In this document: positions 3,839 to 25,682 of the stretch, one piece after another
Layout: the number at the start of each line of letters is the position of its first letter
Position numbering within the stretch: position 1 is the first letter of the stretch
Virus record (IMG/VR): IMGVR_UViG_3300028840_002431
Span: 124,001 to 188,000 of that record
Length of the DNA stretch: 64,000 nucleotides
Reading direction: 5' to 3' (one strand)
Translations under genes and position numbers: made by a program
The notes under the pieces: generated by a model
The model's database searches: none
What the model was told of the DNA's origin: nothing
Seen by the model: only the letters and a program-made list of their open reading frames with translations

Positions 3839-4087
3839 ATGAGCTATTCTTACGACCACAGAACCGCCCGCAAGGCCCCCAAGCTGCCCAGAGGGAAATG
3901 GGAGGTCGGGGGTAAAACCGTCGCTAACGAGAAAGCCGCGATCCAAGCGGCTGTCCAACAATCCATGAGCGGGGGTGGTAAGACCGTCAAGATCTACGAA
4001 CAGAGAGATGCGGTCGGCGGTGTGGAAGGCACCCGTGGCTACAGCGTCACAGTTAAAAGTATCTCCAGAAAAGCTCCGAGACGGTGA
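3839..4087 (+). CDS. YSYD-leader protein
   Basis: Starts MSYSYDHRTA. Confidence 0.65.
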   Translation: MSYSYDHRTARKAPKLPRGKWEVGGKTVANEKAAIQAAVQQSMSGGGKTVKIYEQRDAVGGVEGTRGYSVTVKSISRKAPRR

Positions 4088-4350
4088 GCACACGGAAATA
4101 TCAACGGAAGTGGCCCAACCTGAGCCTGAAGGCCAACGCTATCAAAAGCGCCTTGTCGGACGGCCGTACCACCGTTTACGTGAAAGGGCGGACCGACCGT
4201 ATCCGCCCCCAGCTAAGGGCCGTCGGAGCGAAATGGATTGGGGTCCAACGGGCTTGGGCCATGAGTACAGACGCCGCTGACGAACTATTCGAGAAGCTAG
4301 ACACTTTGGAGACCGAGAGGACAGCGGCGTATTCATACGATCGTCGATAA
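4084..4350 (+). CDS. Small protein with C-terminal YSYDRR motif
   Basis: GTGA overlap with the previous gene; ends AAYSYDRR. Confidence 0.6.
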   Translation: MSTRKYQRKWPNLSLKANAIKSALSDGRTTVYVKGRTDRIRPQLRAVGAKWIGVQRAWAMSTDAADELFEKLDTLETERTAAYSYDRR

Positions 4351-4390
4351 CACTCCCAGGTGTAGAGTTTCTATCGGACACCGGTAATGA

Positions 4391-5236
4391 ATGAGGAGGA
4401 ATGTTATGGGCGAGTACCGCTGGAAACAAAAAGGCTCCGAGGTCGTAAAGCTTCAAGACGCTCTCATAGCCAAAGGGTATTCTTTACCCAAGTACGGGGC
4501 CGACGGAGACCTGGGTAAAGAGACGTGGAGTAAGGTTGAAGCCTACGCCAAAGTAGACCAGTTCCCGACGAACAAACCGTTACCGTTAGAGGTGACGGAC
4601 GAGATACTGGGCATCAAGAGTGAGCCGCCCGGAGATTTCGACTACCCCGAAGGCTATGTCAGAGTGGACGGGGACCCCAACGATAACCACGGGACACGCT
4701 CGTGGACTCAAATCAACACCATCATGATCCACCAGACGGGCGTCTGGATGACCGACACCCCAGAGCGTTTCAAGACATTGAATGCTCACGTTGGCATCCT
4801 GAAGAACCACGAAACACCTATCGTTCAGACGCAGCCCCTGACAGCCTACTGCTACCACGGGAATGAAGCCAACAAGTTCACCATCGGCATCGAGATCAAT
4901 GGAGCCTTCCCCGGACTCATAAAGCGCTACGACTCAGAAAAACATTCAGCCGAAGGTCCGTCAGCCGGTCAGATCGAATCGACCCGTAGGTGCCTCCAAT
5001 GGCTCATGGACGAAATCGAGGCCCATGGCGGTAAGATTCAACACATCATACCGCACCGGGTTTCCAACGACACTCGAAGAGGAGATCCCGGAGAGGTTGC
5101 CTGGAAGGCTATCGGTGTTTGGGCGCAACAGGAGTTGGGTCTAACTGATATGGGGCCGGGATGGACGATTGGAGATGGGACTCCGATCCCGTACGAATGG
5201 GACGGCCGACCCGTCTACAAGAAGTACAAGTACTAG
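4391..5236 (+). CDS. Endolysin: peptidoglycan-binding domain + N-acetylmuramoyl-L-alanine amidase (Amidase_2-like)
   Basis: KGSEVVKLQDAL...GADGDLGKET (PG_binding_1); IHQT, HGNEANKFTIGIEING, PHR, DPG amidase motifs. Confidence 0.85.
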   Translation: MRRNVMGEYRWKQKGSEVVKLQDALIAKGYSLPKYGADGDLGKETWSKVEAYAKVDQFPTNKPLPLEVTDEILGIKSEPPGDFDYPEGYVRVDGDPNDNHGTRSWTQINTIMIHQTGVWMTDTPERFKTLNAHVGILKNHETPIVQTQPLTAYCYHGNEANKFTIGIEINGAFPGLIKRYDSEKHSAEGPSAGQIESTRRCLQWLMDEIEAHGGKIQHIIPHRVSNDTRRGDPGEVAWKAIGVWAQQELGLTDMGPGWTIGDGTPIPYEWDGRPVYKKYKY

Positions 5237-5427
5237 ACTTCTTCCCACCCCTTCTTGAGACACGTTCTCTTATGCAGAACATGAAGCTCCTCACGCGGGA
5301 TCTTCATGTCAAGGAGGGCTAACATCAACGCTGTGCTCAGTTCTTCTTTCGACTGACAGGCGTTGAATAAGCGTTCGAGGCCGTCGTACCGGTCCCGGTC
5401 AGATGGTTGATAGTCGTCTCCATACAT
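5233..5427 (-). CDS. Hypothetical protein
   Basis: ORF preceded by a GGTGTA promoter-like motif. Confidence 0.5.
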   Translation of the reverse strand: MYGDDYQPSDRDRYDGLERLFNACQSKEELSTALMLALLDMKIPREELHVLHKRTCLKKGWEEV

Positions 5428-5623
5428 ACAGGAGCACTACACCACCTGTTAGTAGAGCCGGTGTCCGCCAAAAACCTCCTGGCAAACCGGCGACCCAGGA
5501 GCGAAAGGACAGCATGTGAGGTAAAAGAGGTAGCACACGATACCCGAGGCCCCCTCACACGCTAACGCCTTGACGGAAACGCCTTTTACTTAGCCGGGCC
5601 TCTTCGCACGAAGCACAAAGATA

Positions 5624-6376
5624 CTAACCGTTCGCCTTCACGTCAACAGCGACCTTGCTCAACTTTATGGTCGCCGTACAGAACGGCTCTTTTGCGTCAA
5701 GTTTCAACTCGACGACCTCCACACCCGACATCTTTTCGCCATCCGGTCCATACACTTCCGCGTCTACTGCCCGCCCAGTGGGACAAACAACTCGATATGA
5801 TTGGGTCTTTTCTGACACACCCATAACCTCCTTGAAAAGCAAATTGGGGTCTCCCGGCTCGATCTCCTCCTCAGGCTCGTTGGGGTCAGGCCATACCTGT
5901 TCCCCGTGAAGAGTCAGAACGCACCGCAGTTGTTTCAGAACCTTATCGACTCTCTCGTCTTCCAAGGATAGGAGGGCAACCATCGTGCAGAACCCGTAGT
6001 CCACGTACCCCTGGCTCTGCTCGTATTCATACTCTTTGCCTCTGAGAGCGAATCGTACCGGAGGTAACGTGGAGACCCCTACCGGACCGGACCAACTGGT
6101 TGGCCCGGTAGGCCCTACCGGTCCCGTGGGTCCCGTCGAGCCAGTTGCTCCGTCGAAGCCTCGTTCAAAGGAGACCGAGACTCCCGTATCTCCCCCCTCT
6201 TCTTCCACGGTCTGGATCGTCTCTAGAATATCGTTAACTCTCTCCCTAAGCTCTTCTTCGAGGGTCGGCTCGCTAAAGACGGTGTCATCGGGAACTTCTT
6301 CTAGCGGCTCCATCCGCACAAGATCCCGCAAACGATCCAGGGGAGTGTCTTCGTTATTGTCTTCGGGCGGGGGCAT
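5624..6376 (-). CDS. Acidic protein with short collagen-like (G-P-T) stretch
   Basis: GATGSTGPTGPVGPTGPT; GGTGTA motif upstream. Confidence 0.65.
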   Translation of the reverse strand: MPPPEDNNEDTPLDRLRDLVRMEPLEEVPDDTVFSEPTLEEELRERVNDILETIQTVEEEGGDTGVSVSFERGFDGATGSTGPTGPVGPTGPTSWSGPVGVSTLPPVRFALRGKEYEYEQSQGYVDYGFCTMVALLSLEDERVDKVLKQLRCVLTLHGEQVWPDPNEPEEEIEPGDPNLLFKEVMGVSEKTQSYRVVCPTGRAVDAEVYGPDGEKMSGVEVVELKLDAKEPFCTATIKLSKVAVDVKANG

Positions 6377-6419
6377 TTGAGTAACCTACACCAAAAGTAG
6401 TTTCGGTGTACTTTAGAGC

Positions 6420-6921: not shown

Positions 6922-6947
6922 GAACCTTTTAATGGCCCCCCAAGGGT

Positions 6948-7163
6948 ATGGTGTATTCCTACGACCGGCGCGTAGGCTTCTTCCCTCCCCCACGAGACGT
7001 ACGGGAGTGGTGGAGAAAACTCCCTCGACGCCTTCAAAGAACCGTGGTCCGGGAACTACGGCTTAGCTCCCACGACATGGATGACTGGGACGAGGTGGAC
7101 TGGGAGACCCTCACGGATTATTACACCCGCACGGAAGTAGGAACTCGCGGCCGACAACGCTAA
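6948..7163 (+). CDS. YSYD-leader protein
   Basis: Starts MVYSYDRR. Confidence 0.65.
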   Translation: MVYSYDRRVGFFPPPRDVREWWRKLPRRLQRTVVRELRLSSHDMDDWDEVDWETLTDYYTRTEVGTRGRQR

Positions 7164-7812: not shown

Positions 7813-10285
7813 ATGCTAACAATCTCTGACGCTTTCAAAGCTGGACACATGCGGCTCCGCAGGGAACCCTGGAACCCCTTTGCCCATATCGAACTAATCC
7901 GTGCCGGGGACGGTCACGCCATTTGGGTCAAGCTCCACGATGTTACCCAGATGGTGGAAAGCACGGAACCCCAACAGGTGCCGCTCATGCCTCCCTACGA
8001 CGACGGGACCGCTGTCTGGGAGCCGTGGACGCCCACAGACGAGATCAAGAAACTCCAACCGGGCGTTGACTGGGCTTATTACGAAAAAGACATCTAACAT
8101 GACTCTCGACCACATACAGTCCGTAGCAGAGTATTACTGCACCTTGTTCCGCAAGAACAACATCAAGGCCGTCAACCGCAACGAAGAACTAGGCACATAC
8201 TTCGACGGTGATGTTAGATTCGACCCGGCTTTCGAGCACGCACACTGGATGTGCCAACAACTGTCCCGGATGACGGACTTCGAGAAAGCCAACCGCTGGC
8301 TAGGATTCGTCCAAGGTGTTCTGTGGACCGGCTCGTTCCGGTCCATAACACAAATGAGAGAGGACAACCGTACCGTATGACTCAAGACTTACAGCAACAA
8401 TTCAGCGAAGCGGCCATGGAGTTGAACCTTCAACTCGACAAGGCGTTCACCGTCATAAGAGAACACAAGCTGGGAGTACCGGCGCTGATCAACGCGGACG
8501 GTTATGAGGTCGGCCTCGATAAAGTCCGGGGCCAGTGGCAGTTCTACTACGCGGAAGATGGGATGAAAAAAGCCATGCACTCAGCCCCCATCCTGGCTCG
8601 AATTGCTCTCGCCAATAATCTAGAAGCACTGTGGGGGCAGATTTTACTCAACTACGGGGCAAAACGAGAGGCTATTATAGAGGCGGCCCGCAAAGCCGCA
8701 GATTTCTGCTCCGCCATGGAGGCACAAGATGACAGTGTATGAGTTAGAAAGGCATATGATCCCATGGGACGGGAACAACCCTCCTGAGGTCCCGCAGATT
8801 GTAATAGACGCTCTGGGAGAACCTTTAGAACAGGCCGTGAAGTCAGGCCCTATCGGTGTCGGACACACGGAAGAGACTGGTTGGTTTATCCTGATGTCTG
8901 GCCAAGGCCCCTTCATATTCTGGATGGAAAAAGAGGACGAAGGCCAGTACAGTCAGGCCAACGACGGCCGACGCGATGCCTGGGTTCGCGCACGCCCGTG
9001 AAGAAGAAGCAAACACTAGCTAAACTCCACAACGAGTTCGTGGTCCATGTGAACCGCGACCGTGGAATGAACACCATCTCAGTCCCGCTCTGCGGTCTAT
9101 GTGGTAACAACGGTATTATTAAGACCAAATGGCACCCACCGTGGACGGAGATGGAAACCGACTACGACTCTTACGAGTTAGAAGGCTACTGCATCTGTAA
9201 GAACGGTCGCGAGATGCGAAAAAAGGCGGTAGGGTCAAGATGGGGAGGCACCTCGATCACGAGAGTTCCTCTGGGGTGTAGCCCGCAAGAAGAAGTAGAA
9301 GAGCCAGAGAAAGAAGACGAAAACCCCAAAGATTTCTGGGACCACGTGAAGACGGAAGACTGATGGTAACAAAAGACCAATTGGAAGACTTGAAAAAGAA
9401 GCTCTCGAAGAAACTACCGTGGTGGCAGCCATTCGTGTCCCGCGAGAGGTTCGAGGCGACCCGACACATAGCCCGGCTTCTAGTCATGGAACTGGAAGAC
9501 GAGAGGAGCGGCGTCTGGAAGGACGTTGAGTAGTGCCGAAGGTGTGCAAACCTGACTGCCGGTTTCTATCACCAACGGAGGCAGAGCAAGAAATGATGAT
9601 AAAGCCGTGGCCGCCCCACATGTGCCGAAAATACAACCAACGGGTGCGGCACGTGGGGTACTTATACCCTGGAGAGGGAACCCATCCGGATTTGCTCGCT
9701 CTCCCTGAGTGCGACGGTATCGAGAACACGCTATGGGATCATCTGATGGAAAACTAAGGCTCTGGTGGTGCGGTTGGAACGTCCCCTTCAACATCCCACC
9801 TGAGGACATGCTCGAAGACTGGCCTTACGACATGCAAGGCTGGCACACGGGAGAAGGAAACGACTACTCGACATGGACCGGTGCCGTCTGGGCAGAAACC
9901 GACTCCGCAGCCACTGAGACCGTCTTGTCTTGTTATGGGGCGTCCAGTGATCAAATAACCTTACGCTGGCCACCCCGGCTCCAAGATGACGACTTCACAC
10001 CCGGCGACCGCTTCCCTGACTTCACCCTTAAGAAGCCCACTGGGCCGCCGCCTGAACCAATCAATCTATGGGACCACCTACAAAATGAGTGACAAACCAA
10101 AAGCTGGCCACATGACGCTGCCCAACCGGTTCGTCGGTCATTTGCTTCGAGATTTCGTGGACATCCGACGAGGCGTCGGCATGGACGACGCCGATATACA
10201 AGGGCAATTAGAGGCCCTGACCAACCACACGAAGGTGCCGACCACACTGTTACCCGCGATTCTCAAGATGGCGTTCAAAGAGTAA
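7813..10285 (+). other. Operon of about 9 small hypothetical ORFs (7813-8097, 8099-8380, 8377-8742, 8729-9001, 8998-9363, 9363-9533, 9533-9757, ~9709-10092, 10085-10285), three LWDH-tagged
   Basis: Stop/start overlaps; tags DFWDHV, TLWDHL, NLWDHL. Confidence 0.65.
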
Positions 10286-10321
10286 AGATTTAGTATGGCT
10301 CTCTTGATTATAGGAGACGCC

Positions 10322-10618: not shown

Positions 10619-10902
10619 GTAACCCCAGGAAAGCGTTCGAAGAGGCTGTCACCCGTGAAGCGTTCATGGCCGGGGTTGACTGGAACCGGGTACAGAAGAC
10701 TTTTAACGCCATGATGCACGAGGCGATCAACGGTAAGAAACATGCGAAAGAAGGGGTCGAACAGGATGTGCTCTACGACCTCTCGTACATTGCCTGGGGT
10801 TTGAAAGAAGCAGCGAAGCAATTGGATATGGGTTCGTCAGAGCGCCACGCGGACGCTTTGTACAAACAACTCACGCGGGACGCTCAGTCGGCAGGAGAGT
10901 GA
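10615..10902 (+). CDS. NPRKA-leader protein
   Basis: Starts MSNPRKAFEEA. Confidence 0.7.
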   Translation: MSNPRKAFEEAVTREAFMAGVDWNRVQKTFNAMMHEAINGKKHAKEGVEQDVLYDLSYIAWGLKEAAKQLDMGSSERHADALYKQLTRDAQSAGE

Positions 10903-10932
10903 ACGTCTGAGACGGTGTAATTATATAGACCC

Positions 10933-11739
10933 ATGAGGTCCCACCGTCTCAAAGGCGCATCCTTCCAACCTTCGAGTTGCAACGACAAGCTGAGCAAGGT
11001 ATCGCGCAAGCTCCAATACAACGGCCGCTACGCGAGTCACCCAAAGCCTCCTTACGTCTGCTCCACCTACGTATCCATCGAGGCCACGTGTCCCAAGACG
11101 TGCCGGTTCAAGGACACCGGGTGTTATCCTCAGGTCGGGAACGCGGCTTCGTCGGTCCGGTCCCTGGACGAAGACGCCATGTACGAAGGGCTGACTGGCC
11201 CCGACGTGGCCAAGGCAGAGGCCGAGTTAATCAATCAGGCGTGGCCCAAGGGAGTCCCACAGGACGGCGCTCAAGGAGGCCGGGACCTACGGCTCCACGT
11301 GTCAGGAGAGACGGCGGACACCGCGTCGGCCTGGGCGTTGGGTATAGCCGCCAGCCGTTGGAAAGGTCGCGGGGGAGGTGATGTTTGGACCTACACACAC
11401 AACTGGCGGACCATAGAACCATACGACTTCGGCCCCATATCGGCGTTGGCGTCGGTCGAGACCCAAGAAGAGGCGGAAGAAGCCATCGAGCGTGGGTATA
11501 CCCCAGCCATGGTTGTAACAAAGTTCCCGGCAGACAAGGCTTTTCTGATCCCCGGCACGGGTATGAAGGTCGTCCCGTGTCCAGCCCAGATCCGGACATC
11601 CAAATGTATAACGTGCCGTCTGTGCTTCAAGCCGATGCCGAAGGGTAAGCTTATCGGCTTCCAGTTGCACGGGTTCGGGGCAAACAGGATGGTGAAGAAG
11701 CTTCCCACACTGGGCCAGATGACGATGCCTTGGGCTTGA
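10933..11739 (+). CDS. Cys-rich phage protein (Gp88/DUF7227-like, possibly Fe-S binding)
   Basis: TCPxxCxxxxxGCY, RLHVSG, WTYTH, ASVET, CPAQ, CxxCxLC motifs. Confidence 0.6.
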   Translation: MRSHRLKGASFQPSSCNDKLSKVSRKLQYNGRYASHPKPPYVCSTYVSIEATCPKTCRFKDTGCYPQVGNAASSVRSLDEDAMYEGLTGPDVAKAEAELINQAWPKGVPQDGAQGGRDLRLHVSGETADTASAWALGIAASRWKGRGGGDVWTYTHNWRTIEPYDFGPISALASVETQEEAEEAIERGYTPAMVVTKFPADKAFLIPGTGMKVVPCPAQIRTSKCITCRLCFKPMPKGKLIGFQLHGFGANRMVKKLPTLGQMTMPWA

Positions 11740-11757
11740 TCCGGTGTAAGCTAGGGT

Positions 11758-12012
11758 ATGGCGTCCAAACGCTATTCTAGGTGTACCCGGTGCGGCTCCA
11801 AATTTGATAGGTGGTTGGCGTGCTCCCATATCTACTGCCTCGACTGCCAACCACAGAATAGAAACAAGAACCTCTGGGACCACCTCAAAGACGACTGGCA
11901 GAATTACCTGACGTATACCGAAGAGGAACGAGCCAGAGATGTCCTACTAGATGAAGTCCCTACCCCGGACCTAGGTCCGGGGAGCCGTGTCCAGATTTCC
12001 GGTGTAATTTAG
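11758..12012 (+). CDS. Zn-finger protein with internal LWDHL tag
   Basis: Two CxxC pairs, then KNLWDHL. Confidence 0.6.
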   Translation: MASKRYSRCTRCGSKFDRWLACSHIYCLDCQPQNRNKNLWDHLKDDWQNYLTYTEEERARDVLLDEVPTPDLGPGSRVQISGVI

Positions 12013-12015
12013 ACC

Positions 12016-12414
12016 ATGCTGCCGCAAATACATGAACGTATGCACATGAGCAACGCCTACGCTTTCCTGGCGGAACTCTCAAAAGAGGCCACGCGAGAGA
12101 TGGTGGGGTCGAGTAAGTACCCGATCGAGATGACCGGACAGGGGCCAAGTGCCGGGATGCGTCTGGTCGTTTGCTCCGTCAAAGAACTCGACGACTACTG
12201 TTCCTTTTTGAAAGCGTATGTTGACTCCGAGGTAAACGGAGCGGTTCCGTTGGTCAGGTATTACCAGGGGAAACTAGCGTCCCTGCAAACCGAGATTGAC
12301 GAGGCGTTGGAAAAAGAGGACTGGAACAAAGCTTCACACAGGTTGTGGGACCTGCAAACGACCGGCCAACGGCTACAAGAAAACCTCGACAAGCTCTACA
12401 GCGCTCCAGGATAA
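12016..12414 (+). CDS. Hypothetical protein
   Basis: CGGTG-TAATTT upstream. Confidence 0.6.
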   Translation: MLPQIHERMHMSNAYAFLAELSKEATREMVGSSKYPIEMTGQGPSAGMRLVVCSVKELDDYCSFLKAYVDSEVNGAVPLVRYYQGKLASLQTEIDEALEKEDWNKASHRLWDLQTTGQRLQENLDKLYSAPG

Positions 12415-12415
12415 C

Positions 12416-12988
12416 GTGGTCAAAAAGAAGGACATACCGTTTTACCTAACATGCTTCATTGTCGGGGTTAGTGCCCCTCACACATTCAATTACGGTGTGG
12501 AGCACCCATGGAGAGCGATTCTCATCCTGTCCGGAGTCTTATTGATTTATGCCTTGATCGTCTACAGCCGGACGCTGTCAAAACAAGGGTTGGACGAAGA
12601 ACAAAAGTCGGAGGAGGAAACGGAGTCTGAAAACTATGCGACAGGGGAGGGAACCAGACGGGCAATCGATGAAGAATTTATGAGGGTTGCCGACAACACC
12701 TTGGGTCAACTCGCCGCCCTCGCGGAAGCCTCCGGGCGTTCAGAACCACACAGCGCCATCGGACCCACAGGGCCGGTAGGGCACCCAAACTACTCAGGTC
12801 TGGTGCCACTACAAGGTAGCGTTAGTGCCAGGGAATTGGGTTGCATCTGCCCGCACCCGAACGCCGCTGGTATCGGTCAAACCTTACCCAACCCTAGCTG
12901 CCCGATACACGGATCGAAAGAGCCGGAACCAAAACCAGAACCAGAGCCGGAACCAGAGAAAGATCTCTGGGACCATTTAAGAGGCTAA
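12416..12988 (+). CDS. Membrane protein with GCxCP...CPxHG domain and LWDHL tag
   Basis: Two hydrophobic segments; PE repeats; ends KDLWDHLRG. Confidence 0.65.
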   Translation: MVKKKDIPFYLTCFIVGVSAPHTFNYGVEHPWRAILILSGVLLIYALIVYSRTLSKQGLDEEQKSEEETESENYATGEGTRRAIDEEFMRVADNTLGQLAALAEASGRSEPHSAIGPTGPVGHPNYSGLVPLQGSVSARELGCICPHPNAAGIGQTLPNPSCPIHGSKEPEPKPEPEPEPEKDLWDHLRG

Positions 12989-13058
12989 GGCCGCCACCTT
13001 CCGGAGACGACCTCGTAACTCCTTCTACGCAGATGAGCTACCCAAGGATAACACAGAT

Positions 13059-13511
13059 ATGAAGACAAGCGAGCTATACCTAAAAACCAAAGGGTTTTTC
13101 GTCCACTTGTGTAACATTACAGGTATGCCCGTTCCACGTATCAGGGAACCCGAAGCCCCGGATACCTGTGATTTCACGAGCCATGAAGAAGTGCGGCTCA
13201 ACGTCGTGGGAGCCTACAACGTCACACCGGAACGTCACGCTGCCCACGTCTTTGGCCACTACCTGTGCGACCTTCACGAGTGGGGCAATAAAGAAGATCA
13301 CCCGATCTGCGATGAAATAGCTGACGCCATTGCCGACTTGTTAGACGGCCCGGAGGGGAAAGGCAGTTGTCCTTGTGAATGGACAGAACCATGTGACCCA
13401 CGGTGTACGTGTGTCCATCCGGTCTCAAGCGTCGGTTGTAAGCGATGCTGTCGCTACGGGAGTGACGAGCAACGGAAAGCCCAGGCCGAGCACCTAGTTA
13501 AACATGAATAA
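13059..13511 (+). CDS. Cys/His-rich hypothetical protein
   Basis: HxxxHxxxH and multiple Cys pairs. Confidence 0.6.
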   Translation: MKTSELYLKTKGFFVHLCNITGMPVPRIREPEAPDTCDFTSHEEVRLNVVGAYNVTPERHAAHVFGHYLCDLHEWGNKEDHPICDEIADAIADLLDGPEGKGSCPCEWTEPCDPRCTCVHPVSSVGCKRCCRYGSDEQRKAQAEHLVKHE

Positions 13512-13773
13512 AGACGAAGGACCCAAACTATCTGATGACCCTACCCCCGAAGAACTCAGGGCGTGGGTAGAATACTGGACCCGATGCCCGGCGTGTAAGA
13601 GTAAGCTATCGATGGCCGACGCGGCACTGGGGTATTGCTTCTGGTGCGGGGAGAGTCTGGAATGAGCAAAGTAACGCGGGAAGAACAGGAACGCCAGCGA
13701 CGGATGGAGCATATAGAGAAGCTGGCCAACCGGCGTGAAGAGTCCTATAGCTGGTCCAGATACCAGGAACTGA

Positions 13774-14281: not shown

Positions 14282-14515
14282 GTGAGGGACCCGGCGATCG
14301 ACTGGACCAAGATCAAGGAACGACAGGACAATAGTCCTGAATGCCGCGACCACGAGGGCGTCTACCGACTGCTCAGCGGGCATCTGTATTACGACAGAGC
14401 GGGCAACCGGTCCCGTATCCTTAGCTTCTGTCTGGATGACCCGGAGCAAGGACCGGTTGTTATCGTGCCGATATTCCCGATCGGGGTAACGCTCTGGGAC
14501 TGTCTGACGACCTAA
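14282..14515 (+). CDS. Small protein with variant tag (TLWDCL)
   Basis: Ends VTLWDCLTT. Confidence 0.55.
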   Translation: MRDPAIDWTKIKERQDNSPECRDHEGVYRLLSGHLYYDRAGNRSRILSFCLDDPEQGPVVIVPIFPIGVTLWDCLTT

Positions 14516-14953
14516 CCCTTCTTGTCGTTCCGAGACAGTAGGATTCAGACCCACACGCCTACGAACGTTGGCGATGGGAATCCTTCCCTATAAAACCCGG
14601 TTTGTGCGGCAAACACGGCCACCATGGCCGTAAAGGCCGTTGTGGAACAACGAACAAACCGATCTCACTAAACACGCTCCGCTATCCCCGTCAACGTGGA
14701 TACGCAATAACCCTTCTGAAGCTTCTAGAGTAGCGTTTTCGCAGAAGAATACGCAGAAGAAAGATATAACCGAGCGATTCGATCGAACCCAAAGCAATGC
14801 AATCCGCCAATATGGTATTTATAGAACGCTTAAACACTTGCAACGACTCAAAGGAGCGTCCTATAGAGTTTAAATGCTGAGAGGTCGAACCAAAGCCGTG
14901 CAAAGCAATCGGTCCAACCTCTCGATTAACCACCCAACAGAAAGGTGATAACC

Positions 14954-15742
14954 ATGAAGGAAGATACCACCCAACCCGCTGTAGATCAAGACGAAGACGC
15001 TACAGAGAGCCAAGACGCCGCTGAAGAACAAAGCACCCCCGGCACCAAGAAGGTGCGCCATCAAGTGCTCAGTCTCCCGGAAGCTGTCGCGGCCATAAAG
15101 CTGCTAGTCAACTCGGGAGGGCCAGACTACAGCCTACAGGACGCTGCCGGTACTCTCGGGGGCAGTATCAATTCCGGCACCAACAAACAGAGGATGGCCA
15201 CCCTCGTGAGGTTCGGTTTTCTCGAAAGGTTGAAGGGGGGTGGTTGGAGGCTCACGAATAAGGGGCGCGTCGTCGCTGAGCGGCCTAACACCCCGGAGTT
15301 TTTCCACATTTGCCAAGAGGCTTTCGAAAAGGCCCCCCACTTCTCTGATATCGGCGCTCGTTTTAGCTGCCGTAAATACGGAGAGGACAACATGCTGCTT
15401 AGGAACTTTGTCCGTATTGACCTCAAGGTTCCTACTAAGAAGACCGTCTCCAAGATCGTCAATACGTACCTGGACTCCCGCAGGTTCTTGGACGGGCTTG
15501 GGGCCGAGCCTGAACACGCCGAAGAGCCAGAACAGCCACGCGAAACTCAAAGCGTGCCGGACGAAACCCCCCTTGTCCCATCCAACGGGAGCCACGCCGT
15601 GTTCCAAGCGGTGGTGGACGGCGCTGTCATAAAGAAGACAGCCGAGACCAAGGACGACCTCCCTCGCTCCGTTCACACCTTCATAGAAATGCTGCGTCTG
15701 GAATTCGCTGACGAACTGAGGGCGTACGCCGAGAGGGCGTAG
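14954..15742 (+). CDS. Winged-helix DNA-binding protein (DUF5343-like)
   Basis: SLPEAV...AAGTLG...NSG...MATLVRFGFLE...WRLTNKGR wHTH pattern. Confidence 0.55.
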   Translation: MKEDTTQPAVDQDEDATESQDAAEEQSTPGTKKVRHQVLSLPEAVAAIKLLVNSGGPDYSLQDAAGTLGGSINSGTNKQRMATLVRFGFLERLKGGGWRLTNKGRVVAERPNTPEFFHICQEAFEKAPHFSDIGARFSCRKYGEDNMLLRNFVRIDLKVPTKKTVSKIVNTYLDSRRFLDGLGAEPEHAEEPEQPRETQSVPDETPLVPSNGSHAVFQAVVDGAVIKKTAETKDDLPRSVHTFIEMLRLEFADELRAYAERA

Positions 15743-15758
15743 CCATTCTAACACGGTT

Positions 15759-15787
15759 CGACCCACCCGGTTGTTTCGGGTGGGTCG
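15759..15787. terminator. Perfect 11-bp hairpin, probable terminator
   Basis: CGACCCACCCG-gttgttt-CGGGTGGGTCG just after a stop codon. Confidence 0.5.
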
Positions 15788-15840
15788 TCGCGTACGCGAT
15801 CGGTGTACGAAATCCAGAAGCCTTGCGCACCGGAGGGAGA

Positions 15841-16356
15841 ATGCCTATTCCAAAGCCAAAGGACACGATCCTCACAGAAGAACAATGGGAGTCGGTTCGT
15901 CGTTTGTCTACTTTAGAACAGGAGATTGCCAGGGACTACTACCGTAACGATTTAACTCAAGCCCAGATAGGGCTACGGCATGGCATGACGCAAGCGGCAG
16001 TATCGACCCGACTGTCAAAAATTAACGAACGTTTGGAGTGGGTACAGCACCTGCCGCCCATACCCACAAGCGACCTCACAGAATTGCTAACGCCCGAATT
16101 CAATTCTTCCACACCGATACTGACAACCTTGTACGAAACGACGTGCCAAAGTGAAACGGCTGTCAGGATGGGTTGCTCGCAGGGGAAAGTCCGGCACCAA
16201 CTCCACAAGGCGGTGGACAAACTCGAAACCCTCGTTGAATCAGGCCGCACTGACCTCGAAGAGGTGCTACGAGGGTTGAGAACGATCCGAGATAGGGACG
16301 GAACACTCCACACCTTCGACCACCCGTCGAGGCGAGTTGATGAAATAAACCCTTAG
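15841..16356 (+). CDS. Sigma-70 region-4-like tandem HTH protein
   Basis: LSTLEQEI...LTQAQIGLRHGMTQAAVSTRL and a second HTH QSETAVRMGCSQGKVRHQL. Confidence 0.7.
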   Translation: MPIPKPKDTILTEEQWESVRRLSTLEQEIARDYYRNDLTQAQIGLRHGMTQAAVSTRLSKINERLEWVQHLPPIPTSDLTELLTPEFNSSTPILTTLYETTCQSETAVRMGCSQGKVRHQLHKAVDKLETLVESGRTDLEEVLRGLRTIRDRDGTLHTFDHPSRRVDEINP

Positions 16357-16404
16357 GTTTTACCCCGTAGCCGGTGTAGTATCTGGGTAAGAGGAGGTAA
16401 AGCC

Positions 16405-17733
16405 TTGGGTTCATTTAACGCTACCTGTGCCATATCCGGACTGCCTATCGGGCCAGGAGACCCCGTCCGGTACCTGCTACTGTCCGGAAATTACAGCGAA
16501 AGAGGGCCGGTCTGTATGCCCTTCGATAAGTGGGAACCAAGGACCTTCCCGATCCGGGCCGAGTATAACGACTACGGTTCGATCGAGAACCCCGAAGAGG
16601 GTATCGGCCCTCAGTTATGGCTCGACGGCCTGAAACGGGACCTCGTCCCACAGGGGTGGGGTGATAACAGTTGCCATGACGTGCCGACCGACCCCGACAT
16701 GACGTGGGGCCAATTGTTAGAAGCCCTGTGGGAGGGCCGGGTATTAATCGACCCCAAGAAAGCCAGGGGCATGTCACTCTTGGACCGGGTCCTGGAAGCA
16801 AGCGACAAGATTCTGCTCGAAAAGGCCCGCAAGAAACGGTTGGACCCGGAGGTGCCGGAAGGCGTGCCGACACTGGAACGGATTAAGAACGTCCTGTCAG
16901 GGCACCCGGCGTTCAACGGCTGGGGTAATGACGGCTTCATGGTGGACGAGACCGAACGAGCCGTGGTCCGGGTACGCTGGCACGGCCAGGATCGTATCGA
17001 CCACCTGGAGACGGCCAGAGACCTACTGAACGAAGGCTACGCGGCCCTGTTAGTCTCAGGGAGCGGCAACTATTCCGACGAGGCAGAGGTGTTGGTCTTT
17101 GCCAAACCGGGCGTACGTTGTGGCCGTGGGATGCACCACGAGGCTTATTACGCACCCCGGCCGGTCGCGCCCATGATGATCCGCGAGGACGTGTGGCAAG
17201 CCCTCCTCAAGCTGGACACCGTGGAACGAAGTCTTTGGGGCAGCGAGGAGATGGGTTCCAAAACAGACCGGAGTCTGGGCGCTTACAAGAAAGCGGTCCG
17301 TGATCTGTACGGTCGAAGGCTGAAACAACAAGAGGTCCTCGAAGCTACCGCAAAGAGCGACCTTGAGGTCGCCATCGAGGCCGTGAAAACCAGCGGTGTG
17401 TACCCGAAACCTAATAGCCTGACCCACGCCCTGGAAGATCCGCTGACCCTGAGTTTCGGGTGGGGAGGCCACTGGGAACTGTTAGTTGACAAGGCGCTCC
17501 CCGCCGAAGAGATAAGCGACACCCTCGACGCCGTAGCCGAGTCACTCTACGTGTGTACGGCTCTGATGTGGGTCCGATACCTGTGGCAGCCGTCGCATAC
17601 GGTAGGGCCTCAGTTTGGTTCCTTCAACATGCACGAGGCTTACCACAAGGCCATGGCCCAGATAGCCTACGAACGGCACGAAGAAGACCGAAAGCAGTAC
17701 GAGGACGAGATAGACGAGGAGGACGCGGAGTAA
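16405..17733 (+). CDS. Phage hypothetical protein (MGSFNxTCxxSGL type)
   Basis: 442-aa ORF; GAGGAGG RBS; YNDYG motif. Confidence 0.75.
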   Translation: MGSFNATCAISGLPIGPGDPVRYLLLSGNYSERGPVCMPFDKWEPRTFPIRAEYNDYGSIENPEEGIGPQLWLDGLKRDLVPQGWGDNSCHDVPTDPDMTWGQLLEALWEGRVLIDPKKARGMSLLDRVLEASDKILLEKARKKRLDPEVPEGVPTLERIKNVLSGHPAFNGWGNDGFMVDETERAVVRVRWHGQDRIDHLETARDLLNEGYAALLVSGSGNYSDEAEVLVFAKPGVRCGRGMHHEAYYAPRPVAPMMIREDVWQALLKLDTVERSLWGSEEMGSKTDRSLGAYKKAVRDLYGRRLKQQEVLEATAKSDLEVAIEAVKTSGVYPKPNSLTHALEDPLTLSFGWGGHWELLVDKALPAEEISDTLDAVAESLYVCTALMWVRYLWQPSHTVGPQFGSFNMHEAYHKAMAQIAYERHEEDRKQYEDEIDEEDAE

Positions 17734-20661: not shown

Positions 20662-22408
20662 ATGGCCTACCAGTACACATACACGGTTTATGACAGTTTC
20701 CCGAACCGTAAGGTCGATGTCACTTTATTGACGTTCGAGATCGACGCTTCGTCGATTGTCCCGACGGTCGAGCAAGTCACGCTCATCAAGCACATCAACC
20801 GTCCTGACGCTTGTCGTATCCAGTTTAACAACCCTCTCCTTAGTCAGGAGGAGGCCGTGCTCGAAGGTGTTATAGCGTCGCACGAGGGGGAGGCGAAACG
20901 CGAACCCCAAGAGAGCACACCACCGACGCCAAAGACTTTGTGGGATCATCTGACTGACAACGGCTGACTTCGGTGTAAGATAGGGTGTGTACATACGCGA
21001 CGACTACGATCGTGAAGAACCCATGACCGTGGAGGAATATTATGACTCCATGTCTGTCGAGGAATATTACGCGAACGAGACGCTCCTCAACGATGTCCTT
21101 TTCAAACGTAACCTGTGGGAGCACCTGAGAGACAGGTCCTTTCTACGACATGAAGGTGTTCAGAGCAAAATTCACCACCGATGACGGGAAGTGGCATATA
21201 CCGGGGAACAAGAGACGAAGGACCTCCTGGAGATACTCGCTATGCGGCATACACCTCTACGACCCCACAGAGTGTCAGGAGACCGACGACGACAAATTAT
21301 CAAGTTCGGAAGTCTGCGTTCTCTGTAAGGAACGCCATGGCGGGGTCGAAGAGGACAGGAACCTCTGGGATTATCTGACCACCTAGGAAACGCCCGATGT
21401 GGAGACAGTTCTTACAAAAGAAGTGCCCAGCCGATAACTACCATTGGAAGTGGGACCGGCTGTGCTTCTGTCACGGAGGCAGGATATTGGATCTCAAGAC
21501 CGGCGTGGAATATCGTCGGCACGTGAACCGGACCGACGCCAAGGCAGCCATGTTCGGGCTGTTGTATGGGGCCAGCCCGAACGCGAATGGCGATAGCTTC
21601 TCCAACCTCGAACAACGGTTGCTGGCCCAACGGAGCCGGGTTCCGCCGATCCACCGGGACATCTTCCCACGGAGGGTTAGCTTTCTGGACAACGATACGC
21701 GGTTCATCGGGCCGGACGACGAGGCCGAAGAAGCCGTCCTCGAAGTGGTTGAAAAGCAAGAGGCCGAGAAACGAGCCAAGGAACCGGGTAAGGACCTCTG
21801 GGACCACTTGAAGGGAAGTAAAGAATGACGGTCTGTCCTGACATAGAAACAATCGACAGGCGTATAGTGGAGAAGATCCAGAGCCTGAAGGACGACTCGA
21901 AGCTTCACGGTTGGTCCTTACATAGGGCCTGTGTGGCCCACGGGCTAATCGAAGCGCTATGGGTTGTACGCGGTTACGAGGATGTGCCGGAAGAGGTCGG
22001 TGTGCCATCGCCCCTGGACTTCGAAGGAGACGCTTCAAGACGGCTACAGGTCTAATGTCCCCGCTGCCGCTGACATGCCGGATCTGCGGGAAAACTTGCC
22101 CCACTGAGTTGGAGAGCTTTTCGTACCCCATTATCAACGTGTGTTCAGAATCTTGTGCCGATGTGTTCGAGGAAAGTGAGGGCTGGCGGCCTGGATCAAA
22201 ACCCGCCCGTTTTAGAATGACCCTCTGGAGCTATCTGAGAAGCGAAGACTGTGGGCACGGGAACACCTACGTGGTCCGGGACTCGTCAGATTTTATGAAA
22301 CGGGCGGTCAAACACGAGGTTTGCCGGGACTGCGAACACCTGATTATTACAGTCGATGGGGAGGTCCGCCACGTGTTGTCGAAGCGCAACGAGCGTGACG
22401 TGGCTTAA
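20662..22408 (+). other. Cluster of LWDH-tagged small ORFs (20662-20967, 20987-21184, 21150-21386, 21397-21828, 22055-22408) plus untagged 21825-22055
   Basis: Tags TLWDHL, NLWEHL, NLWDYL, DLWDHL, TLWSYL. Confidence 0.7.
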
Positions 22409-22726
22409 TTATCTGTTAGCAAATTCGTTATAATCTTGCAGCATCTCTAGCGCTTGGGCGGAAAGCTTCTCGGCCTCCTGCACCTTTTCTATGATGTCTT
22501 TTCGCCGCTGTTTCATCTCACGGTTATGTTGTCGAGTTTCAGCGGTGTCGTCGAGTGCGGGAGGGTTGTCCAGGAACGTCACGAAAGCGTGCGGCTTCGA
22601 CATCGACCTGCCCAATTCGTAAAGATTCTCGGAAGCTGCAACCAGAAGGTTCGACCACTTGAGCGCATCCCGGCCCCATCCGGCTTGGCGTAAAGATCGC
22701 TCGAAAGCTTTTCTCGGATTGCCCAT
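22409..22726 (-). CDS. NPRKA-leader protein
   Basis: Starts MGNPRKAFERSLRQA. Confidence 0.7.
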   Translation of the reverse strand: MGNPRKAFERSLRQAGWGRDALKWSNLLVAASENLYELGRSMSKPHAFVTFLDNPPALDDTAETRQHNREMKQRRKDIIEKVQEAEKLSAQALEMLQDYNEFANR

Positions 22727-22783
22727 ATCCCAGAGAGTGTATAAATATAAACGACCAATTTTTCCTTATGACCACGCTGGGAT

Positions 22784-23059
22784 ATGGACGACGCTACCCG
22801 TTGGAAGACATCCGCGCTCCCGCCTGGAGCCAGCCCCAGCGCTTCGGCTGAAAAAGCCGCGAGAGCGCTGCAAGAAGGATTGAACCATCTCGACGAGACC
22901 ATCGAGAATTTCGAGGTGGTTCGTAGTAACCTGGGTTGGAGAGATCTCGACCCGCTCCTCAAGAAGGCCCACGGGATTGTCGAATTATTACACAAGGCGG
23001 GGCGGGAAGGCATTGAGCTATCAAACGAACTCAAAAGAGCCGTCCGCAAGTTACGGTGA
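22784..23059 (+). CDS. Hypothetical helical protein
   Basis: T-rich TAT motif upstream. Confidence 0.55.
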   Translation: MDDATRWKTSALPPGASPSASAEKAARALQEGLNHLDETIENFEVVRSNLGWRDLDPLLKKAHGIVELLHKAGREGIELSNELKRAVRKLR

Positions 23060-23064
23060 ACCAT

Positions 23065-23691
23065 ATGCCTTATAGTTATGACAACCGGAAGCGGAACGCG
23101 GCGGGAAAATCTTGGGGTGAGGCGATCGGCAAGTTCGAGAAGACCTTCCGCAACCTTCTGACAGACGATGTCCCACGCGCCCTCGCGCCCAAGGTCGAAA
23201 AGGCTCTCAAGGAGTTACAAAAGGACCTGGGGCCGAACTGGGAGTATGTCAGGAGCACCCCAAAGGAAATCGCCGGAAAGCTTCTGAGGAACGTCCTCGA
23301 TGCCGTGGTCAACAGTGACTCCGACTTCTCCTGGGCGTTGGACAACACCATTGCGAACTACCTGCCCCTGGAGCAGATGGACCTTGGGGACCTGACCGAG
23401 GAACTGGAACCGGTCATGGAGAAGGAACTCAAGGACTTTCTCCGCAAACACGTACGTGGCGCGACCGTGACCAAAGAAGACACCTGGGCCGGGAGAATCA
23501 CCTTCCGCGTCAAGTTCCCCGAAGACGCCAAACCCTCAAGGGATGTCGATGAGGACGTGGAACAAGCCCTACGCCCTGCAATAGCCGCGTGGTGTAAGAA
23601 GAAGGACATCCCTGCGGGCATGGCCAGGGCGAGCCTGACCTTCTCTGATCCGAATACCGCGAACGGCATGGTTATCGACATAGAACTGTAG
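23065..23691 (+). CDS. YSYD-leader protein
   Basis: Starts MPYSYDNRKRNAA. Confidence 0.7.
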   Translation: MPYSYDNRKRNAAGKSWGEAIGKFEKTFRNLLTDDVPRALAPKVEKALKELQKDLGPNWEYVRSTPKEIAGKLLRNVLDAVVNSDSDFSWALDNTIANYLPLEQMDLGDLTEELEPVMEKELKDFLRKHVRGATVTKEDTWAGRITFRVKFPEDAKPSRDVDEDVEQALRPAIAAWCKKKDIPAGMARASLTFSDPNTANGMVIDIEL

Positions 23692-23703
23692 AAAAGACGA
23701 CCT

Positions 23704-23913: not shown

Positions 23914-24023
23914 GGCCGTTTTTTCTTATGGCGTCGCTGGGGTATGATTACAGGGCTGGCCAAGGCTTTTGACCGGTTCTGCAACGATCACACGCTCTCG
24001 ACGGGCGTTTGATGGAGAACAAC

Positions 24024-24332
24024 ATGTCTAATCCGAGAAAAGCCTTTGAGCAAAGCCTACGCACAGCGACCAACGTTGATATCACCGATGTGGACGCTGT
24101 GTTAGAAAGGTTGAGTCAACTCATAAACGTTGGTTACGAAAACGTCAACGAGGGTTGGCTGCTTGCCAAACAGTTCAAAGACGAACACAAGGGACTTCGC
24201 CGCGAACAAATGTGGCAAGAACGGTCTGAGATTCGAGAAGTGGCCGACGATATCGAGGATATTCAGGCGATACTCTTCAAAGCCGACCAGCTATTACATA
24301 AAGCCCACGTGAAAATCTCAAGAGCAGGGTAA
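24024..24332 (+). CDS. NPRKA-leader protein
   Basis: Starts MSNPRKAFEQSLRTA; GGAG RBS. Confidence 0.7.
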   Translation: MSNPRKAFEQSLRTATNVDITDVDAVLERLSQLINVGYENVNEGWLLAKQFKDEHKGLRREQMWQERSEIREVADDIEDIQAILFKADQLLHKAHVKISRAG

Positions 24333-24453
24333 ACGACTAGATGTATTAAAAAACCCGGCCTCGTTAGAAGCCGGGTCACGTCGTACTGCTAGGGTAGGCA
24401 AGCAGCATGGCAGAAAGCCCGCCCGGTTGCAAGTGGCGGTGTATAATATTGCC

Positions 24454-24708
24454 ATGAAGGTGTTCAGACAAGAAGGTATGCCCCGTGCTGCCAAATGGCA
24501 TATCAAGGGGAGGAAAAAACGGGACCAGCACTATACGTGGTCGCTCTGTGGCTTGGCTATGTTTAACAGCAACACTGAGAAGGTAGATTCAAGCAAACTA
24601 GAGGAGAAGGAAATCTGCGGCCTCTGTAGCCGACGTGCCGGTGGTGTGGCGAAAAAGCCAAAGGATACCGGCAAGAACAAGAACCTCTGGGACCACCTGA
24701 TGGGATGA
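24454..24708 (+). CDS. WHI...LCG...CxxC zinc-finger protein, LWDHL-tagged; paralog of 21150-21386
   Basis: MKVFR...KWHI...SLCG...CxLC...NLWD in both. Confidence 0.7.
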   Translation: MKVFRQEGMPRAAKWHIKGRKKRDQHYTWSLCGLAMFNSNTEKVDSSKLEEKEICGLCSRRAGGVAKKPKDTGKNKNLWDHLMG

Positions 24709-25193
24709 GAAAGCTCTTACAATTCCTGTGCTCCCTGACGACACACCGGCTGCCTTTGTACTACGAGGAACCGTGGGCCTATGCGATCGATAACCCTGAC
24801 GCCCCGGACGCCTTCCAAAGGGTTATCACGTGTACCCGGTGCGGATGGTACGACGAGTCCTTCGTGGGTCAGGTGGCCAGGGCCAAATACAAGGTCCGGT
24901 GGGAAGCCGACGAGGCACGTATGAAAAGGAGCTTGAGATGAGCGAAACTTCGTTACAAACATGGCCACCGGAACCGGGCGACATGGTATCGCTTGGCGTG
25001 GGGTTCGGCATAGTCGATACCGTGGACCCCAGAGGGGCCATGGTCCGAATCGCATCAACAACACGGCCGGACGAATGGCCGAATACCTATCAACTCGAAC
25101 GCTGGCCCAGAACCCGCTGGGACGACCGGAAGGTCTATAAGACCGGCGAGTATTTCATCTGACTGCCAAAACCCTTTTGTATTTTCGTAGGGT

Positions 25194-25682
25194 GTGGGCT
25201 ACTCATACGACCATCGCAAGAGGACAGCCGGACACTTCCACGAGACCGTCCGTGGCCAGGGGTACACAGAACAAGAGGCCCTACGGGACGCCCTGAGCGA
25301 AAACGTGACCGGGTTTGCCGACGAAGAGTACCGAGAGGTCCTCAAGTCGAAGCGATTGCGTGCCCCAAAGCCTCCACGCCGGGTCAAGATCGAGAAACAG
25401 AAGCTCCAAAGAGGTAAGGTCGAAAGGGCCTTCGTCCTGGAAACACGTTGGATGTCCCAGTTGGAGAGGAATCCGGGTCTCGCCGGGGACCGTCAATACC
25501 AGGAGCGCTACAAGACCCAAGGTGCGGCCCTGAAAGCCGCCAAGGAGGTCGCGCTCAAATACGACGTGGAGCTAAATATCTACTTGGCTGCCTTCTGCCA
25601 GGGCGACACACATCTGGCGACCGTGACACCCGAAGCCGGAAAACCGGGCGTGTGGGAGTTCGTGATAGATTTCCACGCCTAA
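25194..25682 (+). CDS. YSYD-leader protein
   Basis: Starts (G/M)GYSYDHRKRTA with a GTG start codon. Confidence 0.7.
   Translation: MGYSYDHRKRTAGHFHETVRGQGYTEQEALRDALSENVTGFADEEYREVLKSKRLRAPKPPRRVKIEKQKLQRGKVERAFVLETRWMSQLERNPGLAGDRQYQERYKTQGAALKAAKEVALKYDVELNIYLAAFCQGDTHLATVTPEAGKPGVWEFVIDFHA

Follow-up and report, generated by a model that had tools for sequence, protein, structure and literature searches.

Several systems use short terminal peptides to bring otherwise unrelated proteins to a common partner. Among the closest to the motif described here is the capsid-targeting sequence (CTS) of the phage T4 internal proteins IPI-III and Alt, a peptide of about 10 residues at the N-terminus that is shared by otherwise unrelated and rapidly varying accessory proteins (PMC5694885). 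In T4, the peptide is removed by the prohead protease at a site motif (L/I-x-E) shared with the capsid protein. In phage P1, an N-terminal signal of 30 residues or fewer directs DarB, a large helicase-containing anti-restriction protein, into the capsid (PMC9024508), and encapsulin cargo-loading peptides, which can sit at either end of unrelated cargo, dock to the inside of an HK97-fold shell. Clamp-binding and PIP-type motifs, ClpX degrons and the SspB tail are short motifs on disordered chain ends of many unrelated proteins, which are evolutionarily plastic and usable at either end. In Staphylococcus phage 80alpha, the capsid and scaffold proteins share a short N-terminal Prp-cleavage motif recognised by one enzyme, which copies a host ribosomal protein leader. 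Here, we describe a six-residue peptide, YSYD[R/H]R, which sits at the very ends of dozens of unrelated proteins in a group of uncultured 300-450 kb phages related to Bacillus phage G, and which behaves like a portable address label. Neither this motif nor a second leader with which it is exchanged appears in the literature searched, and the cultured relatives phage G and Tunturi_5 lack both.

The window analysed is a stretch of 64,000 nucleotides (positions 124,001 to 188,000 of IMG/VR record IMGVR_UViG_3300028840_002431) from a 416.5-kb genome, here termed G000; other G numbers denote related huge-phage records. The original prediction had placed the motif, as YSYD[HRN]R, in five unrelated proteins of the window, at four N-termini and one C-terminus, and this observation was confirmed and proved to be understated. 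The five tagged open reading frames (ORFs) are as follows:
3839..4087 (+), ORF of 82 aa with the N-terminal tag MS-YSYDHR-TARKA (tag codons 3845-3862); no Pfam or PHROG family.
4084..4350 (+), ORF of 88 aa whose last six residues are the tag (...ERTAA-YSYDRR-stop; tag codons 4330-4347); no family.
6948..7163 (+), ORF of 71 aa with the N-terminal tag MV-YSYDRR (tag codons 6954-6971); no Pfam or PHROG family.
23065..23691 (+), ORF of 208 aa with the N-terminal tag MP-YSYDNR-KRNAAG (tag codons 23071-23088); no homologue other than itself among 5.8 billion proteins, and an exact-sequence look-up found nothing.
25194..25682 (+), ORF of 162 aa with a GTG start and the N-terminal tag (M)G-YSYDHR-KRTAG (tag codons 25200-25217); homologues at 55-63% identity carry an R-V-type leader (LHK[KR]IAxxW) in its place.

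No other YSYD copies are present in any of the six frames of the window, and, as had been claimed, no tagged ORF carries the LWDHL tag. A genome-wide scan, which had been suggested beforehand as a check, gave 11 matches to Y[ST]YD[RHN]R, five of them in the window, against 0.035 and 0.005 expected from residue frequencies, respectively, and a mean of 0.05 (maximum 2) in 100 codon-shuffled genomes, which excludes chance. The reversed-pattern control gave no hit in G000 or in any relative that carries the tag, with one control hit in G023. The six further copies outside the window have motif starts at G000 66182-, 77668+, 89882-, 189373-, 189448+, and 400018-/399994- in tandem, and a shorter form, [ST]YD[RH]R, is found at further chain ends (114067-, 238416-) and in linkers. 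Scans of related huge-phage records that did not require a start codon gave 43 copies at N-termini, 4 at C-termini and none internal, so that the tag lies at residues 2-8 in 43 of 47 instances. C-terminal copies occur in G000 (three), G007, G020/G021 and on helicase orthologues, and thus recur in at least three independent lineages (G000; G007; G020/G021), which supports the suggestion that the motif can be used at either chain end. The carriers are also unrelated at the BLAST level: none of the nine G000 proteins compared matches another at E<1e-3 once the tag is removed (the C-terminally tagged window protein and a 487-aa protein were not in that set), and 39 tagged proteins from all genomes form 35 families. 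The tag is kept in six homologous families.

Selection acts on the peptide and not on the DNA, as serine is encoded by both TCN (20) and AGY (17) codons and all positions vary synonymously. This argues against an RNA or DNA element, and no upstream motif shared by tagged genes was seen; a DNA- or RNA-level element was rejected. A translation-initiation element, or a processing or modification site (for example, a cut by one of the phage zincin proteases, or tyrosine or arginine modification) in place of a docking signal, seems unlikely to us, although most copies lie directly after the start codon, two carriers are themselves HExxH proteins and alanine is enriched after the tag; C-terminal and linker copies argue against anything specific to initiation. 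A host sorting signal borrowed by the phage, such as a Tat-like twin-arginine export signal or another bacterial secretion signal, is suggested only by the twin arginine near the N-terminus and is very improbable. The residues after RR are polar or charged and no hydrophobic core follows, which largely refutes this reading. In addition, in one genome from each of 185,579 prokaryote species (596 Gb) the pattern occurs 52 times, roughly at background, and none of these hits shows the phage arrangement of a tag opening a substantial ORF. A Lentisphaerae/Victivallaceae family carries ...WQMY[SC]YDRRR inside a conserved C-terminal region, but this is homology and not a tag. A bacterial origin of the tag was rejected on the same evidence.

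Most tagged proteins are fast-evolving and have no known relatives. Pfam and PHROG searches with about 40 of them returned a single hit, to a SprT-like (zincin) protease, and ESM Atlas searches pointed to PARP/DarT-like and to LPD/zincin folds. These assignments, the SprT-like one included, are leads only; they are domain types typical of proteins injected with phage DNA (PMC5512222). The AlphaFold model of a 214-aa tagged protein was unusable (pLDDT 39), whereas the head-module protein described below folded (pLDDT 78) but found nothing with Foldseek against the PDB. The tagged proteins of the window, which is the most variable part of the genome, have no homologue even in the closest complete relative, although the terminase is 83% identical; the tagged proteins turn over rapidly while the tag stays fixed. 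Phyletic profiling of 604 G000 ORFs across six whole relatives identified no family that is present in all tag-bearing genomes and absent from G019 and G022, although G019 later proved to carry the minimal motif. Tagged proteins show no charge bias of the kind seen in the basic internal proteins of T4.

In three protein families, the tag is exchanged with a second, clade-wide N-terminal leader, R-V-A-x-R-F/Y, which clusters just after the major capsid protein (MCP) gene and around a phage ClpX gene. A head-module protein carries SRVAERY in G000, MYSYDHR in G003, and TVLARW, NLVRRF or NVVARF in G019, G022 and G004; the 487-aa HExxH protein differs from its paralogues in the same way, as does the protein encoded at 25194-25682 from its homologues. 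Lack of conservation of the motif in homologues had been named in advance as an outcome that would count against the original prediction, and this is the case in part, but it reflects a swap between two leader classes and not a loss.

The original prediction is partly supported by our analysis: the motif is a shared terminal tag on unrelated proteins, selected at the protein level, whereas loading into the capsid, inferred there by analogy with the T4 CTS, is compatible with the data but unproven. In favour of this reading, an MCP with an HK97-type fold (phrog_2522, 1.9e-49), a very acidic scaffold-like protein (pI 4.2), a prohead protease (phrog_18299), a portal and a terminase were identified, and four consecutive leader genes follow the MCP gene. 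Small motif-bearing genes abut the protease gene in G000, G003 (two) and G019, the shorter form [ST]YD[RH]R marking small proteins encoded next to the protease, and two YSYD genes are inserted in the head module in G003 and two in G004. On the other hand, tagged genes are overall not enriched in structural modules (about 9 of 28, or about 32%, against roughly 30% of genome length, by our count), the clade is uncultured and the cultured relatives lack the tag, no virion data exist and the presence of carriers in proheads or virions was not examined, and use at the C-terminus and in linkers differs from a T4-type propeptide. A cut after (R/K)xA, as had been proposed, was not assayed here; we see only that alanine is enriched 2-4 residues after the tag (13-15 of 42 instances). 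No conserved Glu follows the tag, and the MCP N-terminus contains K-T-A-A-G-R, which by eye resembles the post-tag K-T-A-A, observations that leave removal by the prohead protease undecided. A complex prediction of the MCP with a tagged N-terminus returned a score of 0.00 and no answer, which counts neither for nor against binding; the protease, the scaffold, the clamp and the ClpX N-domain were not modelled. No receptor was found.

The shorter form [ST]YD[RH]R also marks proteins that fit other hubs equally well, and a hub-binding motif of DNA replication or repair, tethering its carriers by a flexible end to a replisome component such as the sliding clamp or a clamp-like hub, is a possible, if doubtful, alternative. 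The motif lies at extreme ends or in linkers, next to Pro/Ser/Gly/Ala-rich stretches, and is gained, lost or moved between orthologues: a 1,100-aa PcrA/UvrD-like helicase, whose nearest cultured-phage relatives are SPO1-type PcrA/UvrD helicases, carries it at both ends in G001 and G005, at the C-end only in G019 and not at all in G000, and a J-domain protein has it in the linker after the J domain in G000, G003 and G019, with a related YDYDRR before that domain in G005. Both proteins fit a replication or chaperone hub at least as well as the capsid. The phage encodes a clamp loader (PF13177) and a possible divergent beta clamp, but the latter is only a weak lead (best PDB sequence match a beta sliding clamp, E = 0.027). 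The column frequencies of 42 instances do not resemble QL[SD]LF, QLxLxL or the PIP consensus Qxx[LIM]xx[FY][FY], and the uracil-DNA glycosylase of the same genome has no tag. The helicase and the SprT-like protease do carry the motif, but most carriers are small proteins of no known function and with no link to DNA metabolism, so that its placement on flexible ends of replication or repair proteins does not settle the matter either way.

A further, less likely alternative is recognition by an AAA+ unfoldase, protease or chaperone (phage or host ClpX with host ClpP, or DnaK/J), in which the tag would act as a degron or adaptor-like tail that times the removal or remodelling of accessory proteins. 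The tag is located at free chain ends, and ClpX-type degrons work at either end. The phage ClpX has the zinc-binding domain, the GYVG pore loop and the IGF loop that docks ClpP, but a replaced RKH loop; it is present in every relative at least 54% complete except G004, and is flanked by genes with the R-V leader in all genomes inspected and, in G002, by a YSYD gene directly upstream. However, the tag does not co-occur with phage ClpX: G004, which appears complete (127-bp terminal repeat), has 5 tags and no ClpX, G022 has ClpX and no tag, and G019 has ClpX and only three minimal motifs. Phage ClpX was therefore rejected as a tag-specific receptor, while host ClpX is not excluded. The phages carry no ClpP, except G001, and the tag does not resemble known ClpX N- or C-motifs.

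Taken together, we are confident that YSYD[R/H]R (minimal form [ST]YD[RH]R, usually followed by K/T-x-A-A and a Pro/Ser/Gly-rich stretch) is a portable short linear motif, which lies on a flexible chain end and docks its carrier to one common receptor. Our analysis demonstrates that the tag is real, selected at the protein level, terminal, modular, shared across a clade and interchangeable with a second leader; that it binds a receptor at all, that this receptor is in the procapsid and that the prohead protease may remove the tag are inferences. Our leading but tentative reading, held at well below even confidence, is that the receptor is part of the assembling procapsid (the scaffold-like protein, the prohead protease or the capsid interior), in which case tagged accessory proteins would be packed into the head and delivered with the DNA, and the tag would work like the T4 CTS, the N-terminal packaging signal of P1 DarB or encapsulin cargo-loading peptides. 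A replication or repair hub and recognition by a Clp-type unfoldase or chaperone are live rivals. More speculatively, and in our view improbably, these phages may run a multi-label protein address system: at least four classes of terminal peptides exist, namely N-terminal YSYDRR, N-terminal R-V-A-x-R-F/Y, N-terminal NPRKAFE and C-terminal LWDHL, which together mark about 80 of roughly 600 proteins in G000. No paper in the literature searched contains YSYDRR, LWDHL, RVAARF/Y or NPRKAFE in a relevant sense. Exchange of labels between orthologues would, in this view, re-route a protein between destinations such as the capsid interior, the replication machinery or a proteolytic or unfolding machine. 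Huge phages are almost entirely uncultured and most of their genes have no known function, and a portable peptide shared by dozens of their fastest-evolving proteins gives a handle on this dark matter, as it groups unrelated proteins into one functional class and points to a receptor that can be fished out with a synthetic peptide. If it loads the capsid, it identifies the set of proteins the phage injects into its host and offers a new packaging tag for engineering, and the swapping of leaders on orthologous proteins is a testable example of proteins being re-addressed during evolution.

In comparison with the known systems, the tag resembles the T4 CTS in being a short, mostly N-terminal peptide shared by unrelated and rapidly varying proteins (35 BLAST families), encoded in a genome with a prohead protease and an acidic scaffold-like protein, although whether its carriers are head-internal was not determined. 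Its consensus, YSYDRR-K/T-x-A-A, has nothing in common with the T4 CTS and no L/I-x-E cleavage motif is present, and it further differs in its use at C-termini and in linkers, its occurrence on core non-virion-type proteins (the helicase and the J-domain protein) and its alternation with a second leader. As with encapsulin cargo-loading peptides, the tag is usable at either end of unrelated proteins and the MCP has an HK97-type fold; binding to the luminal face of the shell was not assessed, the sequence differs from the encapsulin cargo-peptide consensus, and this is a tailed phage with scaffold and protease. Its consensus is also unlike those of the clamp-binding and PIP-type motifs, the ClpX degrons and the SspB tail, with which it shares its position on the chain ends of many unrelated proteins. 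The Prp-cleavage motif of 80alpha is likewise a short N-terminal leader on unrelated phage proteins, but no bacterial counterpart of YSYDRR was found. Finally, the P1 DarB signal, which has no sequence similarity to the tag, also acts on a large helicase-containing protein, as the 1,100-aa helicase carries the tag in some genomes, but it is specific to one protein, whereas YSYDRR is a motif shared by dozens.

The 416,539-bp IMG/VR virus record under study (G000, 55% G+C) encodes a recognizable set of head and housekeeping proteins, although its gene starts were assigned by ORF logic and the gene set is a greedy longest-ORF call. The proteins that could be placed on the genome are as follows:
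12804-13682 (-), HK97-type major capsid protein (phrog_2522, E = 1.9e-49)
14437-15642, a very acidic scaffold-like protein (pI 4.2)
15688-17163, head-maturation (prohead) protease
21041-22834, portal
25124-27166, large terminase
39880-41136, a clamp candidate (a weak lead only)
296503-297768 (-), ClpX, outside the window
380403-383702 (-), UvrD/PcrA-like helicase with a roughly 270-aa N-terminal extension, encoded among tail and structural genes
1-5702 (-), an ORF of 1,900 aa at the contig end with long collagen-like G-x-T / G-P-T repeats

In addition, a sheath-like protein, GroEL, a clamp loader and a J-domain protein were identified. The capsid protein is 84% identical to that of the uncultured huge phage LR745208, 48% identical to that of the Tunturiibacter (Acidobacteriota) phage Tunturi_5 and 40% identical to gp27 of Bacillus phage G. 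The window, bases 124,001-188,000 of the record, is the most variable part of the genome, and only 2-20% of its ORFs have a homologue in the closest complete relative, G003, whose terminase is 83% identical. The ORF at window 4391-5236 (+), directly after the C-terminally tagged gene, looks by eye like a peptidoglycan-binding domain fused to an amidase-type lysin, no family scan having been run on it, and tRNA-like sequences (T-arm GGTTCGATTCC, CCA end; ARAGORN was not run) lie directly upstream of three tagged genes at about 66.2, 77.6 and 89.9 kb of G000, where the tagged genes sit in a tRNA-rich variable island.

The original prediction that a short YSYD-type peptide recurs at the ends of five window proteins holds, and all five copies sit exactly where they had been placed. 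A genome-wide motif scan, which had been put forward as a way to check the observation, was carried out in six frames and finds 11 matches to Y[ST]YD[RHN]R, whereas residue frequencies predict 0.035 and 100 codon-shuffled genomes gave a mean of 0.05. Ten copies lie at residues 2-4 of an ORF or, in one protein, in tandem (M-YTYDRT-TF-YSYDRR), and one forms the last six residues of an ORF. The only other YSYD in the genome (YSYDQG, inside a long ORF) does not fit the full motif. Across 42 instances serine is encoded by TCN (20) and AGY (17), and every other position varies synonymously; selection is therefore on the peptide. No tagged ORF carries LWDHL, a C-terminal tag found at 31 sites in window 9731-56202 (e.g. 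10066-10080, 24685-24699 and 45088-45102) and at 36 sites in G000 as a whole. LWDHL lies 1-9 residues before the stop in 27 of the 31 window copies, and 23-76 residues before it in the other four, on many small ORFs and often after a Lys-rich stretch. Its codons also vary synonymously, and it is shared only with G003 (as LW[DE]H[LV], about 35 copies) and absent from 10 other relatives. A further N-terminal motif, M-x(1-5)-NPRKAFE, occurs on eight G000 proteins of about 100 aa, including those at window 10624 (+), 18488 (+), 22717 (-) and 24033 (+), and is also enriched in G003 (MNPRK).

The YSYD tag is a feature of a clade. Start-anchored DNA patterns recovered it almost only from very large IMG/VR contigs of 73-435 kb and 44-65% G+C; as such instances are biased towards N-termini, they were not used for the positional counts. 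The relatives are IMG/VR records, some of them incomplete. Scans of whole records with a pattern that does not include a start codon gave 43 N-terminal, 4 C-terminal and 0 internal unique instances, while the reversed-pattern control gave no hits in any record of the first two rounds of scanning and one hit among the nine records of a third. The C-terminal copies are the window's own, ...VVAS-YSYDRSK-stop in the related record G007, and ...PET-YSYDSR-stop in the related records G020/G021. Across one genome from each of 185,579 prokaryote species the start-anchored pattern occurs 52 times, which is about background, and no hit shows the phage arrangement. Phage G and Tunturi_5 lack the tag, and no paper in the library searched contains the motif in a relevant sense. 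Among the related records, G019 lacks the full YSYD tag, has three copies of a minimal form of it, and has its own over-represented peptides (FNYRG, VVIDM, FQLQRKNY and ENYSPS; 10-14 ORFs each), which may represent a paralogue family or a DNA repeat read in frame.

The carriers are, as had been claimed, largely unrelated to one another: with the tag removed, 39 tagged proteins fall into 35 BLAST families, some tagged genes having been recognized only through the motif. Pfam and PHROGs recognize one of about 40, a SprT-like zincin. The window's 208-aa protein has no relative other than itself among 5.8 billion proteins, and neither it nor the window's 162-aa protein has a homologue in five related genomes. 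Searches of the ESM Atlas gave weak leads for two carriers, namely a PARP/DarT/Tpt1-like fold for a 214-aa protein and LPD1/LPD23/zincin for a 487-aa HExxH protein; these remain leads only, since TM-scores were below 0.5 and our own model of the 214-aa protein failed. These domain types are typical of effectors delivered with phage DNA (PMC5512222). Conservation of the motif in homologues had been named in advance as a point on which the proposal could fail, and where homologues exist the tag is usually kept. This holds for six families, including the 487-aa protein in G003 (YTYDRR) and an 84%-identical homologue of the 214-aa protein (YSYDFR).

A shorter form, [ST]YD[RH]R, is itself far above chance, with 19 copies observed against 1.5 expected in G000, 12 against 1.0 in G003 and 9 against 1.0 in the relative G004. 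It marks further extreme C-termini in G000 (...TAP-TYDRR-stop at 114067- and ...SE-SYDRR-DPTEGL-stop at 238416-), as well as small proteins encoded directly beside the prohead protease gene, namely G000 17156-17443, two M-TYDRR-Y genes in G003, and a small ORF in G019 with a TYDHR copy near its C-terminus. It also lies in the linker just after the J domain of a conserved J-domain protein in G000, G003 and G019, whereas in the relative G005 a YDYDRR lies before that domain. The UvrD/PcrA-like helicase carries it at both ends in the relative G001 and in G005, at the C-terminus only in G019, and at neither end in G000, and the C-terminal tails of the orthologues share [RK]-T-A-A-x-[YF]-[ED]. Among the whole genomes examined, G022 shows no enrichment of the motif: no match lies in an ORF of 45 aa or more, and its three six-frame matches compare with 1.26 expected. 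Gain, loss and relocation of this kind between orthologues are what one expects of a short linear motif on disordered segments. This plasticity, together with the helicase and the SprT-like protease, fits binding to a replication or repair hub, a reading that we regard as possible but unlikely.

The tag is interchangeable with a second N-terminal leader, M-x(3-8)-R-[VI]-[AV]-x-R-[FY], which is carried by all seven whole genomes, including G019 and G022. This leader is usually followed by x-x-A and occurs on about 15-20 proteins per genome, one of them at window 2-19 (the ORF starts 17 nt before the window); phage G and Tunturi_5 show it only at background level, and it was not found in the literature searched. 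Three independent swaps link the two leaders. First, a head-module protein (phrog_37844) begins M-PTAS-RVAERY in G000, with TVLARW, NLVRRF and NVVARF in G019, G022 and G004, respectively, and M-YSYDHR-KTAY in G003, while the bodies are 46-55% identical. Second, the 487-aa tagged protein has two paralogues that begin M-[DN]LSH-RV[AV]xRY, and all three share the body from AGxFEAPPAM onward. Third, the window's own protein at 25194-25682 has homologues at 55-63% identity that begin with LHK[KR]IAxxW where it has YSYDHR. In an AlphaFold model of the G003 head-module protein (pLDDT 78) the leader is predicted to form a short, low-confidence helix set apart from the folded body. The N-terminus of the G000 capsid protein (Q-V-I-S-E-Y-I-K-T-A-A-G-R) has, as seen by eye only, the same layout as the leaders, a six-residue core ending in an aromatic residue followed by x-x-A-A, and the leaders may imitate the N-arm of the capsid protein.

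In G000, four consecutive genes directly after the capsid gene (10746-12718) carry the R-V leader and four more surround ClpX (295355-298353). G003 has two YSYD genes inserted into the post-capsid cluster, and G004 has two YSYD genes in its head module and one at the slot syntenic with the 487-aa gene. Taken over all genomes, however, tagged genes are not enriched in structural modules (by our count about 9 of 28, against about 30% of genome length). Phage ClpX is an attractive candidate for the receptor, as it has the zinc-binding domain, the GYVG loop and the ClpP-docking IGF loop, although its RKH loop is replaced, and it is conserved in all relatives at least 54% complete except G004; no phage ClpP was found except in G001. 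ClpX does not, however, track the tag: G004 appears complete (127-bp terminal repeat) and has five tags but no ClpX, whereas G022 has ClpX and no tag. Recognition by an unfoldase or chaperone would fit the use of the tag at either chain end and the ClpX neighbourhood, but we consider it the least likely of the three readings weighed here. No phage protein family has a distribution that matches presence of the tag, and a receptor, if phage-encoded, is therefore probably a core protein; roughly 100 proteins are shared by all seven genomes.

What the sequences show directly is a peptide that is selected at the protein level, concentrated at chain ends, shared across a clade and exchanged with a second leader; that it is a modular docking tag at all is an inference, which we hold with high confidence, and the identity of any receptor is inferred far more tentatively. 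No experimental data exist for any tag-bearing phage. The original interpretation of the motif as a capsid-targeting signal is supported only in part. Loading into the procapsid is nevertheless the reading that we tentatively favour over the others, since it best fits the combination of a constant tag with hypervariable cargo, the location of motif-bearing genes next to the protease and capsid genes, the leads on the nature of the cargo, and the precedents set by the capsid-targeting sequence (CTS) of phage T4 and by DarB of phage P1.
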